DNA from: Guillardia theta CCMP2712
Lineage: Eukaryota > Protista > Cryptophyta
DNA length: 64,000 nt
Direction: 5' to 3'
Assembly (NCBI RefSeq): GCF_000315625.1
Contig: NW_005434665.1
Coordinates: forward strand, 741,220 to 805,219
A program made the translations under genes and the position numbers. A model generated the notes under the pieces. The model worked only from the letters and a program-made list of their open reading frames with translations. It searched no databases and had not been told where the DNA came from. Shown here piece by piece: positions 16,322 to 59,293 of this stretch; position 1 is the stretch's first letter, and the number at the start of each line of letters is the position of its first letter.

Positions 16322-19300
16322 ATGTTCCATCATCACATGGAGGACTCAGGACACAGCAGTGACGATGAGATAGTTTTCATGGAAGATCCTTTCAGAGAGA
16401 ACGAGACTCAGCAGGAAAGTCGGTTCTTTGACTCTACAAACATAGGCAGCAGCATCTTGAACTCGCACCATAACAGCAGAGATGAGGAGTTCTTCAGAAG
16501 CTTGCCGAGACAAGGCATGGAGGAAGGGCATCATGATGATGGGTTGTTTGAGGACAACTCATGGCAGAGGAAGTCTGCAAGTCTGTTTGAGAAAGCAGCG
16601 AATGGAGAAATCCAAGATCTCTTGGACGAGCTGCCGCCCCCAGACGAGTTTGACTCCTCCTACCTGTCCACTCACAACAGCGAGGAGCAGAACTTTTACC
16701 CACAGAGAGATCGTCTGGATCTTCCTTCCTCCTCTGCCTCGCATGGCAGTGGCATCGCTATCAGCGGTATGCATCCCGGGTGTCGATACGAGTGGACAAG
16801 AATGCACGGGGAGCAGAGCAGGGGGGAGCCGTTGATGGTAGCGCCGCCGTCTCTCGCTGAGCAACTGGACACAACAAGAGCACTCTTGAGAGCGAAGGAC
16901 AGAGAGCTGAACAAACAGTCAGACATGATCAGGAGTCTGGAGGATGAACTAGCAGTCTGCAGAGCGGCCATCGGCGAGCGAGAGCAAAGTTTGCTCGAGC
17001 TGAAGTCGTCGTACGATCATCAGATGCAGGAGAGGAGGAGGCTGGAGGAGAGGCTAGAGCACACGAATGTGACAGTGGAGCGGTTGAGAGAACAGTGTGG
17101 GAGCTTGCAGACGGAGCTCGACAAGTCCGACAAGACGATAGACGAGCTTCATGCCCGGATCCGAAGTTTGCAGACAGGGGACGCGGTGATGTCGGGGGAC
17201 ATGTACGAGCACCACCTGAGCGCGTACAAGGAGGAGATGGAGCACACCCGATCGCAGATGGAGGAGTGGAAGAAGCAGGCGAGGGAGCTGAGAAACATCA
17301 TCGACGAGCAGACTACACAGGAGATGCACCTGACAGGTTTGACAAGGGCGATGAGAGATGCGGCTTGTCAAGTCGAAGATGAGGATGCCGGCATCTTGAA
17401 GAAGGTGGATGGTCAGGATGGCAAGGAGGAGGAGGAGGAGGAGGAGGAGGAGGAGGATGTTGGGGTCAAGACTTCACTCATTGCGCAAGTTCGTGCGCTG
17501 GAGTGTGAGGTTCAGCAGTTGAGACATGAGTCGAAGATGAAGAAGAGCGGGGAAGTGGAGGAAGAGAGCAGGGAGAGAGCAGACAAGGAAGAAGGAAGCA
17601 GAAGGGATGGGAAGTCATGGATGAAAGAGGTGGGGGAGGAGCTGAAGAAGCTGGAGAAGTTGAACGTCGAGCTGGTGTCTGCGAACAAGGAGCTGATGAG
17701 CGCAAACAAGAAGCTGCTAGAGCAAAGCAGGAGAGAGAGAGAGAAGAGCAAAGGAAAGGCGGACTTGGCTGGTGAAGAGCAGCCCCAGCAGGCGAAGAGG
17801 CTGGAGAAGGAGAGGGAGGAAGGGGAGGAAGAGGTGAGGAGGAAGATTGCGGTGGCGCTGAAGGAGCAGGAGACCAGGCTGAAGGCTGACAAGGAGGACG
17901 AAATCAAGAGGCTCCGGACAGCATGGAACAAGCACACGCAGGAGTCCGTACGAGCAACGGAGGAGCGCTGCACGAGAGAGCACAAGGAGGAGTTGAGGAG
18001 GACGAGGGGGCAGAAGCTGGACCAGACGACGCAGTCCTGCCCCGAGCAAGTCCATCGGTCGTCGCAGACATTCGCGGAGACGTCGCTGCCTCCGATGAAG
18101 AGACTTGAAATGAAGGAGGAGGGACAGGGAGTGGGGCCAGGTGGGGGCCAGGCGTGCGAGAAGGCGCCAAGGGAGGGAGAAGTGGAGAGAAGGGAAGAGG
18201 AGGTGAAGGAGGTGAAGGAGGTGAAGGAGGTTAAGGAGGTGAAGGAGGTGAAGGAGGCGAAGGAGGTGAAGGAGCAGGCAGAGGAGGTCAAGGAGAGAGT
18301 CAAGATGGTGTTGGACTTGGATTGGGCAAGCATCGGCGATCTTCCTCTCTTCTCTCGAGAGCTACAGAAGGACGTGGCATGGGCCGTTGGGATCCGCGAG
18401 TCGCGCGTGAGGGTGGAGGAGGTGAAGGAAGGGAGCGTGCTGGCGATTCTCTCCTTCCTGCCAGCTGCTTCACCCGAGGAGAAGGAGGCGGAGGAAGTGA
18501 TCCACGAGCTCGAGGAGCAGCTGGCTGCTGACATCAGCAGCCTCAAGATTGGCATCCAAACAAGGCACCTGAAGAGGATTGAAAGGATCTCCTCCTCCTC
18601 TTCCTACTCTTCCTCCTCTTCCTCCTCTTCCTCCTCTTCCTCCTCTTCCTCCTCCTCTAAGTCGTGTGATCCATCACTTCGGCTGGGAGAGAGGAAAGAA
18701 GGAGGAGCGAGGGAGGCAGAGGAGATGGGAGAGACGAGGAAGACCAGGACGTCCATGGATGTTAACTGCCAGCATGAAACCGCAGAGGAGCAGGAGGGGC
18801 TGAAGGACGCAACACGCGGGGAGGAGGAAGCGAGGAGGAGGGAACTTGAGTCGGACAAGGATGCCGTGAGGAGGATGGCGATGATCAGGAGGATGGAGGA
18901 GATGGAGAGGCTGAGGGAGGAGATGGAGGAGGAGACGCGGCGGGCGATCGACGAGCTGAGAGGAAGGATGGCTGCGGAGATGCAGACACGGCTGGAGCAA
19001 GTGAGAGCTGAGACGAGGGGAGAGAAGGAGCAGGAGGAGGCAAGTGCGAGGGAGGAGGAAACCTCTGCTGAGAAGGAAGTGCAGCTAATGGATCAAACTT
19101 GCCAAACAGAAGAAGAGCAGGTCAATGAAATTTCGTGTACCAGCGCAGCATGTCAGACGGAGGAGGAGGAGGAGGAGGAGGTCAAGAGAATGGAGGACGC
19201 TGATGTGCAGTGCTCGATCGAAGTCGACCTGTTCATCGCCAACAATCGAGATGAGTACATGGAACGCCTGCGGGTGAGGAGGAGGAAGAGGAGGGGTGGA

Positions 19301-22300
19301 GGGGGGGGGGAGGGGGGGGGACGGGGGGGGAGGTGCGAGAGAGCTGAGAATTTTGACGGAGACGCAGGCATCGCTGGAGCAGAGTCTGGAGGAGGAGACT
19401 GAGAGGATGAGAAGGTCCATGGAGCAGAAGGTGGCGTATGAGCAGAGCAGGCAGGAGATGACGATGAAGCATGCGATGGAGGATGAGGAGAGAAGGTTGG
19501 AGGAGAGGTTGGAGGGGGAGAGGGCGCAGAGAGCCAAGGCTCTGCGGGCCGAGGAGGAGGAAAAGCTGAGGAGGGTGAGGGAGAAGCTGGTGGAGGAGAG
19601 GAGGACAGCATCGAAGCAGATCATCGAGGAGGCAGTGGAAGCGAGCAAGAAGATCCGAGAACAGACTGTGAGGATCTTGGAGGAAGAGTTCGGCAAGGAG
19701 ATCAAGTCAGCCCGCATCCTGCACGCGTGCCAAAGGAGGAAGGTGCTTGCGGAGATGGAGGAGGAGCATGCGGCAGAGATGGAGGAGGAGGTTGAGGAGG
19801 CGAGGAGGGAGCACGAGAGGATGAAGAAGGAGAGGATGAGGGAGATCGTTCATGCTCATGAGGTCGAAGTGCAGAGGATGGAGGAGGAGCTGGAAGAGGT
19901 CATGCAGAAGAGGATCGAGGATGTGAAGGCGACGAGTGAGAGGAGGCAGGAAGAGGAGAGGAGGAGGGTGGAGCAGCGGGTGAAGGAGCTCATAGACCGG
20001 CTGAGGAAGGAAGCTGAGGAGGAGGAGGAGAAGCTGCAGATGCGCTTCGAGGAGGAGCGGGAGCGGGCAAGGAGGAGGCACCATGTTGATGTGGAGGAGA
20101 CGATCCGGGAACTGGAGGAGGTGAAGGAGGAGCTGATGGAGACGGTGAGGAGGAGGGTTAAGGAGAGCTGCGTGCTGGACGGGGTACAGCTAGAGGAAGA
20201 ATCCCTGCTGCTCGTAAGGCAGCAGCTGCAGGAGTGGAAGGAGGAGACGAGGAGGCAGACGTCGCAGGTGCTGGACGAGTTGTTCCGCAAGAACACGGAG
20301 GAGGAGGTGGAAGAGCTGGGGGCGCTGAGGACGCAGCTGTCGCAGGAGAACGAGGCTGTTGTGAGTGCCTTGCTGGAGAGCTTGTGCAGGTGGGAGGAGG
20401 AGGAGAGTTTGCGGCTCGGCCGGCAGCTGGAGGAAGAAAGGAGGAAGGCGATGGAGGACGAGGAGAAGACGCACCAAGAGAGGATGGCCAGGGCAATGAA
20501 GGATGTAAGGGCGGAGATTGAGGAGGCGCAGGAGCGGAGGAGGAGGGAGCTCGTGCAGGAGGAGGAGGAGAGGGCAGAGAAGGAGCTTCAGAGCATGCGC
20601 GGGAGGCACGAGGAGGAGCTGAAGGAGCGGCTGGGGGAGATGGAAGCAGAGTTTGAGAGGAGCCTGCAGGAGGCACTGACCAGGAGGGTGCGGGAGCTGC
20701 GCGGAGCTCATGAGGAGAGGATGGCGGAGGTGAAGAGGCGGCTGGAGGAGGAGCGAGCGAGGAAGCTGGAGGAGGAGGAGGAGGAGTCGAGGAGAAAGGC
20801 CAAGGAGGAGACAGACAAGCTCAGGTCGCAGCTGGAGCAGGAGACGGAGAGGAGGAAGAAGTCGACTCAGGTGGAATGTGACGATCTGTACGACAAGAAG
20901 ATATGGGAGCTGGAGCTGCGTGCGGAGGAGGAGCTGGAGGAGAGCGTGAAGGAGCACAGGAGGAAGGAGGAGGCAAAACTGGAGCAGGAGCTGCGGGCTC
21001 TGGAGGAGGAGCTAATGAAGGAGCGGGAGCGAGAGCTGGGCTCCATGAGGAGGAGGGCAGAGCAGAGGCTGATGAGGCTGAAGCAGGAGATGGAGGAGGA
21101 GTACGCAGGGGAGAGGCGCGAGGCGATGCGCAAGGTCAGCAGGGAGGTGGAGGAGGAGAAGAACTCGCTGCTGTCGAGGAGGATGCGAGAGATCGAGAAC
21201 GGGACGCAGGAGCTGCTGCAGGAGCTGCAGGCAACGAAGGAGGAGGAGCAACGTGCGACCCTGAAGGAGCTGGAGGAGAAGCTGAGGGGGGAGCTGGAGG
21301 CGAGCACGAGAAAGAAGCACGAGGAGCTGAAGGAGGAGGCACATACGGCGATCGCTCGGGTGCAGAAGGAGCTGCTGGAGAGGAGGGAGCAAGTGCTGCG
21401 GGAGGTGGAGAGAGAGTGCGAGGAGGAGCTGAAGCGGGAGAGCAGCAGGATGCACGACGTGTTCCTGACCTCGAAGCGCGAGAGGATCGACGCGCTGGTG
21501 CAGGAGCAGAGGGTCGAGGAGGAGAGGGAGCAGCAGGAGCAGGTCCTGCGGGGTGAGCTGGAGTTGTCGAGGGAGGTGAACGCGCTCAAGGAGGAGTGCA
21601 AGGCAGACGTGGAGAGGATGAAGTCGCTGATGCGCGAAAGGTTCTCCGACGAGCTCAGGAGGATCTGTACCAAGGCGAGGATACGGAACTTTGCCAAGTC
21701 GTGCGAGCAGAAGAGCGCCAAGGGCTGTGCCGTCGAGCAGAAGGGAGAGAGCATGGCGAACAGGTTGCGGCAGGAGTGGAAGGAGCAGTTGCGGGAGCTG
21801 ATGGAGGGCTGGGAGGAGGAGGAGGGGATGTTTGCCTCCCTCCTCAGCCAGCTGGAGGCTGTGGAACAGACGCTGAGCACGATGAGGGCTGTGTGCGGGG
21901 GGAGAAGCTTCAAGCCAGCCGAGGCGACGTACAGCTCCCTGTGGACGAAAGTGGTGAGGGAGAGCCGAGCATTGCTCTCCTCCTCCTCCTCCTCCTCCTC
22001 CTCCTTCCCCGAAGAGGATCGGACTGCGGGACTAGAGCGCAGCATGCAAGAGCTTCTCTCGCTCTTTCTCCCTGCGCCCTCGCCCTCGCCCTCGGACGCA
22101 GACCTCAGCATGTCCTCGACGGTTCCTGCCACAACACCGGCTGCAACGCCCTCCAAGTCGACGCCGGGCAAGGCGCGCAGGTTCCACATCAGCCCTGCCC
22201 CCTCCAGCGTGAGCGCCTGCAGCATGACTCCTGTCCTCGCGTCTCCTGGCTCATGGGGAGAGAGCGCAACGTCGCCTGATCGCATCCTCCTGGACATGTC

Positions 22301-56705: not shown

Positions 56706-56762
56706 ACAAAGAAGAAACATGTGCATTCACGCTGCTGCTCGATGCACTCCAAGTGCGCCGCT

Positions 56763-56830
56763 GCCTCCTTTCGAGGATCGACCTGCTCCGAGAGCTTTCT
56801 GTCGACCCTGTCATCCGTCTTCGAGGAAGC
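56763..56830 (-). promoter_or_regulatory. SECIS element (type II) in the TrxR 3' UTR
   Basis: Minus strand: GCTTCCT/AGGAGGC helix I, ATGAC...CGAA GA quartet, AGGGTCGAC/GTCGATCCT helix II, unpaired AAA, and GCTC-TCG-GAGC apical mini-stem. Confidence 0.9.
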
Positions 56831-56896
56831 GAGAGCACCACAGGCTGCTGCCACCCGCCGACCAGGAGCTGGTCGGGAGGAGGGGTGGCAGCTTCT

Positions 56897-59081
56897 TTAT
56901 CCTCAGCAGCCCGAGAGCTTCACCTTCTTGCCTGAGCTCTTGGTCACGCTCAGCGTCGTGAAGGACTCAGCGCTGGTGGGATGGATGCCGACGAGCTCGT
57001 CGAGGTCCCTCTTGCACGCCCTCAGCTTGACCGCCAGCGCGAAGCCCTGGATGATCTCTCCTGCGTTGTCCCCGACGATGTGCATGCCGATGATCCGCTC
57101 CTGCTCGGAGGGGAGCACGATCACCTGCAACCCCCGTCAGCTTCCTCTCCCTCTCCCTCCTCTTCTTCGCCACCTTGAGGAAGCATGCTGTCTCCTTGCG
57201 CGCCGCCCTTGGCTGCAACTCCATCATTGGGAGCGCCCACTCGAGCGGCCTATAGAGGTTGTGGTAGACTTCGATCTTGTCCTTGCCGTAGGTCTTGATC
57301 GCCTCCTCCTCGCTCATCCCGACGCATCCGTACTGCCAGCAGCGTCAGCATCGCACCCGCCCGCAGGACAAGATGCCTCGAGAGGGGTGAAGACTGTCGT
57401 GGGGACGCCAAGGTAGTCCATCTTCCTTCTTGAGTTGCCGAACAGACGATCAGCAAGGAGCTGACCAGCCTGGATGGCAACGGGAGTAAGCTCAGGACGA
57501 CCGTCAAGTACGTCCCCGATGGCAAAGATGTGCTCGCAAGTCGTCTGCTCTGTGTCTCCGATACCCTCCCCGACCCCGACGATCTTCTCAGACTTGCTCT
57601 CGACCTTCACGCCCGCTTTGTCGAGGTCCAGCTGCTTCGTTAGCGCGTACCTGCAACACAGGCAGGTAAGGAGACGACTTGCACGTCGACAGGAGCGTCA
57701 GACCTGCCAATGGCGAGGAGGACTGTATCGAACACGTCCTGCTTCATCTCGCCCTTGTCATCGGTGTAATGGACTTTCACCTGCTTGCCAACCCTCTCGA
57801 ACTTCTTGGGCAGGCATCCCCGCCAGATGTCAACCCCGTCCTTCTGCATGTAGTCCACTACAAGCTGCGCACACTGCTGGTCGAACCCGCGCAGCGGAAT
57901 CGACCGCATCATGACTGTGGAAGAGAATCCGATGGCGTGCAAGAAGCCGGCACACTCAAGAGCTACGTAGGAGGCTCCGACCACGAGAGTTCGGCCTGGC
58001 GGTTCCTTGAGAGAGAACAAGTCGTCACTCGTTACGCAACACTCCCTGTCTCCTTCAACATCAAGATACTTGGGTCTGCCTCCCACCGAGATCACAAATG
58101 CTGCTGCTGTCTTCTTCTCGATTCGCCCTTGGGCATCCCTGAGTTCGACGGTGTGGGCATCTATGAAGCGAGCTTTGCTGTTCCAATACTCGACGTTTGC
58201 TGACCTCAGCTCGTTCCTGGTTACCGACAGGTTACAACGTCGCTAGAGAGCACGAAAAACAAGCACGTGCAAGACAATTGTGTGCGGAGAGAAGACATGG
58301 AGTTTGGGGTCAGGGTAGCAGGGAGGGAGGGAGGCAGGAGGAGACTGGTCAGACCTGTATCCGAAGTTCAAGCTTCCGATGTAGTTCTGGACGTTGTCGA
58401 CAAGCGTCTCCCATGAGTGTTGGACATCGTCGGGGCATGCAAACCCGAAGCTCTTCGCGTCCAAGATCGCCTCGTGGATCAGCCCCGCTCGATGCATCAG
58501 CTTCTTGGGGATGCAGCCAACGTTGACACACGTTCCTCCCAGTCCCCATGACGTCCCCTTGGGCGTCGGGTCCACATAGTCGCACACCGCTACCTGTAAA
58601 CTGCATCAGTCGCATGATGCGAAAGAGGTACAATGGTCGGCTCTGCGACCTTTGCGCCATGGCTGGCCGCCTGCTTCGAGCATGCAAGGCCTCCCGACCC
58701 TCCGCCGATGACGATCAGATCATATTCGTAGGGATGAGAAGCAAAGTTGATATGGTTTTCCGCTACCACGACAGTCTCAGTGTTTGGGGACCCTCGCGGA
58801 GCAGGGGAGCTCGATTGCATGAAGGCACGTGATCGCTTCGCTCGCATCTCGGAAACATCCTCTGCATAGATCTCGCTCTGCAGCCCTTCCTCCTCGAACT
58901 CTCCGGCCGCCTTCTCCATCGCCATCTGAAGCCGGACCAAGGCATTGCCTCCCCCACGAAGTCTTGCCAGCCTCGCCGCAGGCATCGCAGGGGGGCAAGG
59001 CGTGAGCTCGGCGAGGGAAGGGGCAACGAGAAGTAGCGATGCTGCAGCGAAGAGGAGAGGAGAGGAGAGCCAGGCTCTCAT
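56897..59081 (-). CDS. TXNRD: High-Mr selenocysteine thioredoxin reductase with an N-terminal signal peptide, multi-exon
   Basis: [40 protein letters not shown] and GIHPTSAE. The C-terminus GGC TGC TGA GGA TAA reads G-C-U-G-stop, with a SECIS downstream. Confidence 0.95.
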
Positions 59082-59293
59082 GCTGCAAGCGCTCCCCTTC
59101 ATTCCTCCTCCTCGTTAGGCTTGTCCTCTGTTTTCCCTTTCCCCTTTTTTCTTCTTACATTTTTCGAGCCCGCCTCAAGGTTTCCCTTTTAGCCTCCTGC
59201 AGGCTCCTTTGGGCTCCTGCTCCTCCTGCTCTTCCTGCTCCTCCTGCTCCTCCTCCTGCCCCATCGCTCCTCTCTCCCCTGACGATCAGGGCC

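Follow-up and report, generated by a model that had tools for sequence, protein, structure and literature searches.

A selenocysteine thioredoxin reductase of Guillardia theta with a ubiquitin-tail box in its putative periplastid import leader

The window, by which we mean the whole stretch of 64,000 nt of Guillardia theta DNA that was analysed, contains a six-exon gene on the minus strand. Read exon by exon, it encodes a large thioredoxin reductase with the residues RLRGG in its leader. The features of the gene, in the direction of transcription, are as follows.

58650..59102, minus strand: exon 1, 151 codons, ending GAK ahead of a GT donor and including the FAD-binding GGGSGG motif
59010..59102, minus strand: signal peptide, residues 1-31, with a hydrophobic core, small residues at -1/-3 and a likely cut after SLA (crude heuristic)
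58965..59009, minus strand: transit-peptide-like spacer, residues 32-46, 15 residues
58950..58964, minus strand: ubiquitin-tail box RLRGG (P5-P1), with a proposed cut after G51 and a proposed mature start at G52 (58949-58947)
58728..58949, minus strand: N-terminal extension, residues 52-125, specific to the leader isoform and missing from the paralogue on C115
58355..58593, minus strand: exon 2, redox-active disulfide motif, read in translation
57704..58216, minus strand: exon 3, Pyr_redox_2 / Pyr_redox NADPH domain
57377..57650, minus strand: exon 4, boundaries judged by eye against the paralogue
57174..57332, minus strand: exon 5
56897..57124, minus strand: exon 6, dimerisation domain, ending Gly-Cys-TGA (Sec, 56905-56903)-Gly-TAA (56899-56897)
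56847..56892, minus strand: stable hairpin starting 11 nt after the UGA (-35.5 kcal/mol, z -2.9)
56757..56819, minus strand: SECIS-like element in the 3' UTR (Rfam SECIS_1 match of 27.2 bits with E 0.011; the gathering threshold is 35)

The Pfam domains Pyr_redox_2, Pyr_redox and Pyr_redox_dim were matched across the exons; in all similarity searches single exons were used as queries, and the exons were never joined into one protein. The FAD-binding GGGSGG motif was identical in every orthologue covering that region, and the redox-active disulfide motif of the FAD domain was present in the exon 2 translation. The intron after exon 4 (57333-57376) measured 44 nt and was apparently of the GC-AG type when read by eye against the paralogue. 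At 56911-56897, the codons GGC TGC TGA GGA TAA give a C-terminal Gly-Cys-Sec-Gly with the UGA in frame. The sub-threshold SECIS_1 match lay 78-140 nt downstream of the stop, on the same strand as the gene. From the domains found exon by exon, the Gly-Cys-Sec-Gly end, this SECIS-like match and the hairpin after the UGA, it follows that the gene codes for a selenocysteine thioredoxin reductase of the large, animal (TXNRD) type. As an indirect hint of transcription, RNA-like runs contained 0.55-0.72 of the words of the stretch.

Two further Sec-type paralogues were found in the same genome, and both end in Gly-Cys-Sec-Gly like the leader-bearing gene. The selenoenzyme proposed in the first-pass annotation is borne out by the GC-TGA-G-TAA end and its recurrence in both paralogues, with the SECIS-like match adding its sub-threshold 27.2 bits. 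The paralogue on C115 starts right at the FAD motif and has no leader, and is presumably the cytosolic form; it showed a SECIS_1 match of 24.4 bits 3' of its coding end, also sub-threshold. In the C33 paralogue the reductase is joined in frame to a DUF4395 membrane domain. With three Sec-type genes, one leaderless and one membrane-fused, the gene with the RLRGG leader is the signal-peptide isoform of a three-member family. Mammalian TXNRD2 and Plasmodium TrxR are organelle isoforms of large thioredoxin reductases and show a similar arrangement, namely a compartment-specific N-terminal extension beside a leaderless cytosolic form. They use mitochondrial presequences or alternative initiation, however, and not a signal peptide followed by a ubiquitin-tail box.

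The leader is read from the minus-strand ORF at 58590..59102, which runs through 31 residues of signal peptide and 15 residues of spacer into R-L-R-G-G and then G-N-A-L. The first-pass annotation had placed the start at 59081; a Met does lie there, but it is the second one, and an in-frame Met stands seven codons upstream at 59102, four codons past a stop. Signal peptides were called here and below by a home-made crude heuristic, not by a dedicated predictor. Glu follows the likely signal cut (SLA|E), in agreement with the earlier statement that the residue there is non-aromatic. Residues 32-62 contain four Arg and one Glu, for a net charge that is positive. The box is separated from the signal peptide by only 15 residues, and A-R-L-R-G-G ends 20 residues past the predicted cut. 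The identity of RLRGG (coded at 58964..58950, minus strand) with the last five residues of ubiquitin was read correctly at the outset. P6 of the box is Ala in the reductase and not Leu; Leu was also missing at P6 in 10 of 18 carriers that had been sampled without a P6 constraint. Pfam detected no ubiquitin domain on exon 1, and in the AlphaFold model secondary structure was absent upstream of residue 54.

The catalytic core begins near residue 125, and a conserved 73-residue extension separates it from the box. In the orthologue alignment and the AlphaFold model, the conserved catalytic core of the reductase does not follow directly after GG. Two helices were predicted in the extension, at 54-71 and 80-97, by AlphaFold on exon 1 with low confidence (pLDDT 55), and the structural claim is therefore restricted to these two tentative helices. 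The extension also holds an invariant Arg-x-x-Arg at R87/R90, 40 residues downstream of the box. Its pattern R-x-[KRQH]-R is convertase-like in some orthologues and lacks dibasic character in four of the 11 sequences of the alignment.

To gather the orthologues, a profile of the leader was run against 1.8 billion representative proteins, and 11 sequences were aligned. Exon 1 gave its best matches with Hanusia phi, Baffinella frigidus and clusters that contain Rhodomonas proteins, which points to a cryptophyte genome; a Rhodomonas salina protein (EukProt) includes the signal peptide, again an indirect hint that it is expressed. L48, R49, G50, G51 and G52 (LRGGG) were identical in all 10 cryptophyte orthologues covering the site among the 11 aligned, and in the same 10 the residues that follow show x-[VA]-x-x-R-h-x-x-A. 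LRGGG is invariant although the distant orthologues are only 34-42% identical overall and their signal peptides and spacers diverge. Two metagenomic orthologues read H-L-T-V-R-L-R-G-G, which is near ubiquitin's H-L-V-L-R-L-R-G-G. In some orthologues a possible signal cut is followed directly by Phe or Leu (Baffinella ASA|F; P0026/P0030 EA|F), and the aromatic +1 rule would place such proteins in the stroma.

The number of codings alone does not set the box apart. In the 64,000-nt window we counted 11 LRGG codings against 12 expected, and genome-wide the counts of LRGGG and RLRGGG were below the reversed-pattern control, so there is no overall excess of these codings. LRLRGG codings did exceed the control genome-wide (353 vs 255). 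The excess lies in the position of the motif, its conservation and its recurrence over the genome, not in the window count. From the amino-acid composition, the chance of RLRGG in a leader of 60 residues is about 2e-4. A second RLRGGG coding of the window (18648-18664, minus strand) was considered as a leader and rejected, as it is antisense to a long coiled-coil ORF.

Counting LRGG after predicted signal peptides against background had been proposed in the first-pass annotation, and the outcome was strongly positive against a background of 1.9%. The samples were the first places listed by three whole-genome pattern searches, blind to context, and comprised 67 LRGGG, 58 RLRGGG and 59 new LRLRGG true sites. 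To flag a site, the heuristic required that a Met in the same frame stand 18-95 residues upstream, with the limit raised to 110 in the LRLRGG sample, and that a hydrophobic 10-mer free of charged residues come after this Met; the 1.9% is the share that it flags among all six-frame positions of the same DNA. It flagged 5/67 LRGGG sites (p 0.008), 9/58 RLRGGG sites (p 1e-6) and 31/59 LRLRGG sites (p 9e-38). Judged by eye, 43/73 (~59%) of the true LRLRGG sites among the first 100 listed places, whatever their frame, have a signal peptide 13-80 residues before them. Extrapolation from 43/73 gives about 150 genes with the full LRLRGG leader box, and variants at P6/P5, such as A-R-L-R-G-G, add more carriers beyond these.

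We defined the class by [L/x]-R-L-R-G-G standing 13-80 residues past a signal peptide, and the reductase belongs to it. In 53 leaders the end of the box fell 13-79 residues after the predicted signal cut, with a median of 29. The box logo of these leaders showed a variable residue after GG (S, E, Q, M, L, Y, F, V, K, G). By the crude prediction, just 2/53 spacers begin with Phe (+1). A 28-residue profile of the box region, run on the genome, returned only the reductase gene and one G-patch gene, this kind of search being coarse for short motifs.

Most box carriers in the sampled leaders had no Pfam domain at all. Those with domains included GTP_EFTU (EF-1alpha), XRN_N (5'-3' exonuclease), G-patch, Hat1_N (histone acetyltransferase) and Ribosomal_L22e. 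A tRNA-synthetase-type OB fold, a methyltransferase and a GT4 glycosyltransferase were further carriers, and weak matches were obtained for a CBM20 starch-binding domain and a RETICULATA-like protein. The recognisable carriers are cytosol- or nucleus-type proteins. Such cargo behind a signal peptide is what is expected for the cryptophyte periplastid compartment (PPC) and nucleomorph.

Two of the carriers place the box exactly where leader and mature protein meet. Alignment with solved EF-1alpha structures puts the Gly that comes after LRLRGG of the EF-1alpha gene on residue 2; likewise, residue 2 of solved XRN1/XRN2 is matched by the Gly that follows RLRGG in the XRN gene. The leader thus stands exactly in place of the initiator Met, and in both families the native N-terminus comes directly after the box. 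Eleven EF-1alpha orthologues from other sources retain L-x-L-R-G-G-G-K-E-K behind divergent leaders. To judge from the alignments, this layout is that of a ubiquitin fusion, which deubiquitinases cut after Gly-Gly. As the core of the reductase begins only 73 residues past its box, the junction argument for this enzyme is borrowed from EF-1alpha and XRN.

Deubiquitinases process ubiquitin precursors and ubiquitin fusion proteins after LRLRGG. The likeness lies in the hexapeptide directly before the released protein and in the variable P1' residue. The difference is that no ubiquitin fold stands upstream here, and the leader consists of a signal peptide and 13-79 unconserved residues.

According to a published rule (PMC4494062), a leader without an aromatic residue at +1 leads to the periplastid compartment, and the leader of G. 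theta tyrRS1 is experimentally periplastid-targeted (PMC4494062). The reductase leader, with its predicted signal peptide, positive spacer and non-aromatic +1 residue, matches this rule (PMC4494062), as the first-pass annotation had suggested; the complex red plastid that it had supposed agrees with the organism being a cryptophyte. By this rule, and by analogy with the cytosol- and nucleus-type functions of the other carriers, we infer a periplastid location. In the PPC bipartite signals of cryptophytes and diatoms (Gould et al. 2006 as cited in PMC4494062 and PMC12136025) the same elements occur, namely a signal peptide (a predicted one in the reductase), a positive spacer poor in acidic residues, a +1 residue that is not aromatic and cargo of cytosol or nucleus type. 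The difference is that the accounts of these signals in open-access papers and preprints, as far as they go, describe neither a conserved box that closes the leader C-terminally nor a defined cut site for PPC residents.

The explanation that we favour, with reasonable though not strong confidence, is a bipartite PPC import leader that is closed by RLRGG, is probably cut after GG and belongs to a genome-wide G. theta class. Comparative and statistical evidence gives good support to a putative PPC leader closed by a reused ubiquitin-tail processing signal; cleavage, protease and location we infer from it. As the box is kept in related algae and is common to about 150 or more periplastid-type genes, it probably marks the point at which the leader is cut off.

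The reductase would be made on host ribosomes, and its precursor would enter the ER and lose the signal peptide there. The positively charged spacer would then take the precursor across SELMA, the translocon, and into the periplastid compartment. Most likely a protease of that compartment with specificity for ubiquitin tails would cut after G51 and release the reductase at G52, and the mature enzyme may keep periplastid thioredoxins reduced with NADPH. The box class as a whole would mark proteins going via ER and SELMA into the periplastid compartment and nucleomorph, and the reductase would be a PPC selenoprotein.

The nature of the protease is a more doubtful matter. The box had been called a deubiquitinase-type maturation site, and the maturation part of this claim gains from the place of the box at the leader/mature junction in EF-1alpha and XRN. 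Against it stand the 73 residues between box and reductase core and the ptDUP-type clade of periplastid deubiquitinases, which is known in diatoms and reported absent from cryptophytes (PMC12412216). The box leaders have no globular body of ubiquitin, which counts against cutting by a classical deubiquitinase. Classical deubiquitinases bind that globular body too. A short linear box can nevertheless suffice as a substrate, since Z-RLRGG-AMC, a free peptide, is cut by a papain-like protease that has deubiquitinase activity (PMC9271420). Papain-like viral proteases such as that of rubella cut linear L-x-G-G and take short RLRGG without the ubiquitin body, and the natural rubella site has a third Gly after GG, like RLRGG-G of the reductase (PMC9271420). 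They differ in being enzymes of viral polyprotein processing. We know of no papain-like protease of the viral type in any periplastid compartment. A deubiquitinase-like protease, taken alone, is a candidate that we put forward tentatively.

The strongest alternative holds that the box serves periplastid leaders for recognition, sorting or retention and is not a cut site. It could, for instance, be bound by ubiquitin-handling parts of SELMA, or act as a stop to stromal import, and the leader would be kept or removed elsewhere. Conservation of the box and its positional enrichment also fit such a role, and it would agree with the conserved 73-residue extension that follows the box in the reductase and with the reported absence of the ptDUP clade from cryptophytes (PMC12412216). 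However, the box exactly replaces the initiator Met of EF-1alpha and XRN, and the residue after GG varies freely, as expected of P1'. An uncut leader of 30-80 residues on EF-1alpha or XRN also seems unlikely to be tolerated. We therefore regard an uncut sorting element as unlikely.

That the enzyme goes on to the plastid stroma, with the box as a part of the stromal transit peptide or its processing site, appears quite improbable. Several orthologues do have Phe or Leu after a plausible signal cut, but the G. theta protein itself has Glu at +1, Phe stands at the predicted +1 in only 2/53 box leaders, and the carriers are not of plastid type. A reductase of the ER lumen or a secreted one, with the box cut by a protease of the secretory pathway, would also have a signal peptide (called by the heuristic) and a non-aromatic +1 residue, and the conserved R-x-[KRQH]-R 40 residues downstream is convertase-like in some orthologues. 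This R-x-x-R is not dibasic in 4/11 aligned sequences, however, the spacer is positively charged and transit-peptide-like, and EF-1alpha, XRN, ribosomal L22e, Hat1 and the G-patch protein, which carry the same box, have no role in the ER lumen, which makes this destination very improbable. A chance match to the ubiquitin tail in an Arg/Leu/Gly-rich leader, for which the chance-level LRGG count of the window and the genome-wide LRGGG and RLRGGG counts not above the reversed-pattern control could be quoted, is refuted by the invariance of the box in 10 orthologues, the positional enrichment of up to p 9e-38 and the probability of about 2e-4 per leader.

Under the favoured reading of a PPC leader cut after GG, the box bears on how the leaders of PPC residents are removed in complex red plastids, and on what separates PPC from stromal proteins besides the missing aromatic residue. 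In the open-access papers and preprints searched, we found no paper linking LRGG, LRGGG, RLRGG or LRLRGG to cryptophytes, nucleomorphs or plastid targeting, and neither ASAFind 2.0 nor the aaRS targeting paper mentions such a box. If the reading is true, it allows the periplastid and nucleomorph proteome to be predicted by a simple sequence rule and yields exact predicted mature N-termini, which can be compared with existing proteomics; the diatom N-terminomics paper covers stromal proteins only. The RLRGG peptide would then be a biochemical handle for finding the protease. For the gene described here, the reading predicts a selenium-dependent thioredoxin reductase in a relict cytoplasm, which would mean that a host-made selenoprotein is exported into an endosymbiont compartment.

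A broader proposal, which we offer as a possibility more than an expectation, is that cryptophyte periplastid and nucleomorph proteins are matured like ubiquitin fusions. LRLRGG would close the leader, and a ubiquitin-type protease of the relict cytoplasm would cut it. The box would define the proteome (at least 150 genes), fix the N-termini and perhaps block onward import into the stroma, and the reductase would be the first selenoprotein assigned to the PPC.

For the proposed function of the reductase, the periplastid thioredoxin and reductase of diatoms offer a precedent by analogy (PMC3101018). In that system (sTrxH2 and sNTRC; Weber et al. 2009 as cited in PMC3101018), an NADPH-dependent reductase with a bipartite leader is proposed to keep the PPC reduced. 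The diatom sNTRC, as described there, is a selenium-free fusion of a low-molecular-weight NTR with thioredoxin, whereas the G. theta enzyme is a high-molecular-weight Sec reductase of the TXNRD type. A genome search for a thioredoxin partner listed 74 places.

Directly behind the box, the ubiquitin-tail motif that closes its leader, the thioredoxin reductase of the window carried a conserved extension. The extension and two further features of this gene are located as follows.

58728-58949, minus strand: isoform-specific conserved extension, residues 52-125, directly after the box
57333-57376, minus strand: intron 4/5 of 44 nt, read by eye against the paralogue
56847-56892, minus strand: hairpin (−35.5 kcal/mol, z −2.9)

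Within the extension lay a predicted basic helix and an acidic stretch, along with an invariant R-x-x-R, which was RAKR in the window gene and RQRR, REKR, and RAQR in the orthologues. This segment may serve in docking or in nucleomorph import.

The hairpin started 11 nt past the selenocysteine UGA and lay 5′ of the SECIS-like element in the 3′ UTR, and it may act as a second recoding signal. Judged from the sequence, intron 4/5 appears to have GC instead of GT at its 5′ end, making it a GC-AG intron.

A third Sec-type thioredoxin reductase paralogue was observed on contig C33 (L003, G000:C33:91829-95023), with an ORF at 1-1320 of this piece and exons further downstream. Its N-terminus showed a DUF4395 membrane domain (PF14340, E 8e-15) fused in frame to the reductase, and its C-terminal end was SGC-TGA-G.

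Outside the leaders, one coding of the motif in the window was found to overlap the following ORF.

16322-19402, plus strand: Glu/Lys-rich coiled-coil ORF of 1026 residues with long Ser and Glu runs

This ORF accounts for the RLRGGG coding at 18648-18664, which is simply its antisense strand and not a leader. Of the first 100 places listed by the genome-wide pattern search, 73 were true LRLRGG codings, read on contigs C1-C22, and no ubiquitin gene was among them; the ubiquitin genes therefore lie elsewhere, or the search passed over them as common words.

Duplicated box-bearing genes were also observed. Two tandem paralogues lay 3 kb apart on the minus strand (L121, G000:C13:130766; L122, G000:C13:133884) and shared the LRLRGGG box and the mature start, but the exon with the box also showed the signal peptide in only one of the two. 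Two identical GT4 glycosyltransferase leaders with the box (L186, G000:C18:773674, minus strand; L187, G000:C18:775174, plus strand) were oriented towards each other with 1.5 kb between them, forming an inverted duplication.
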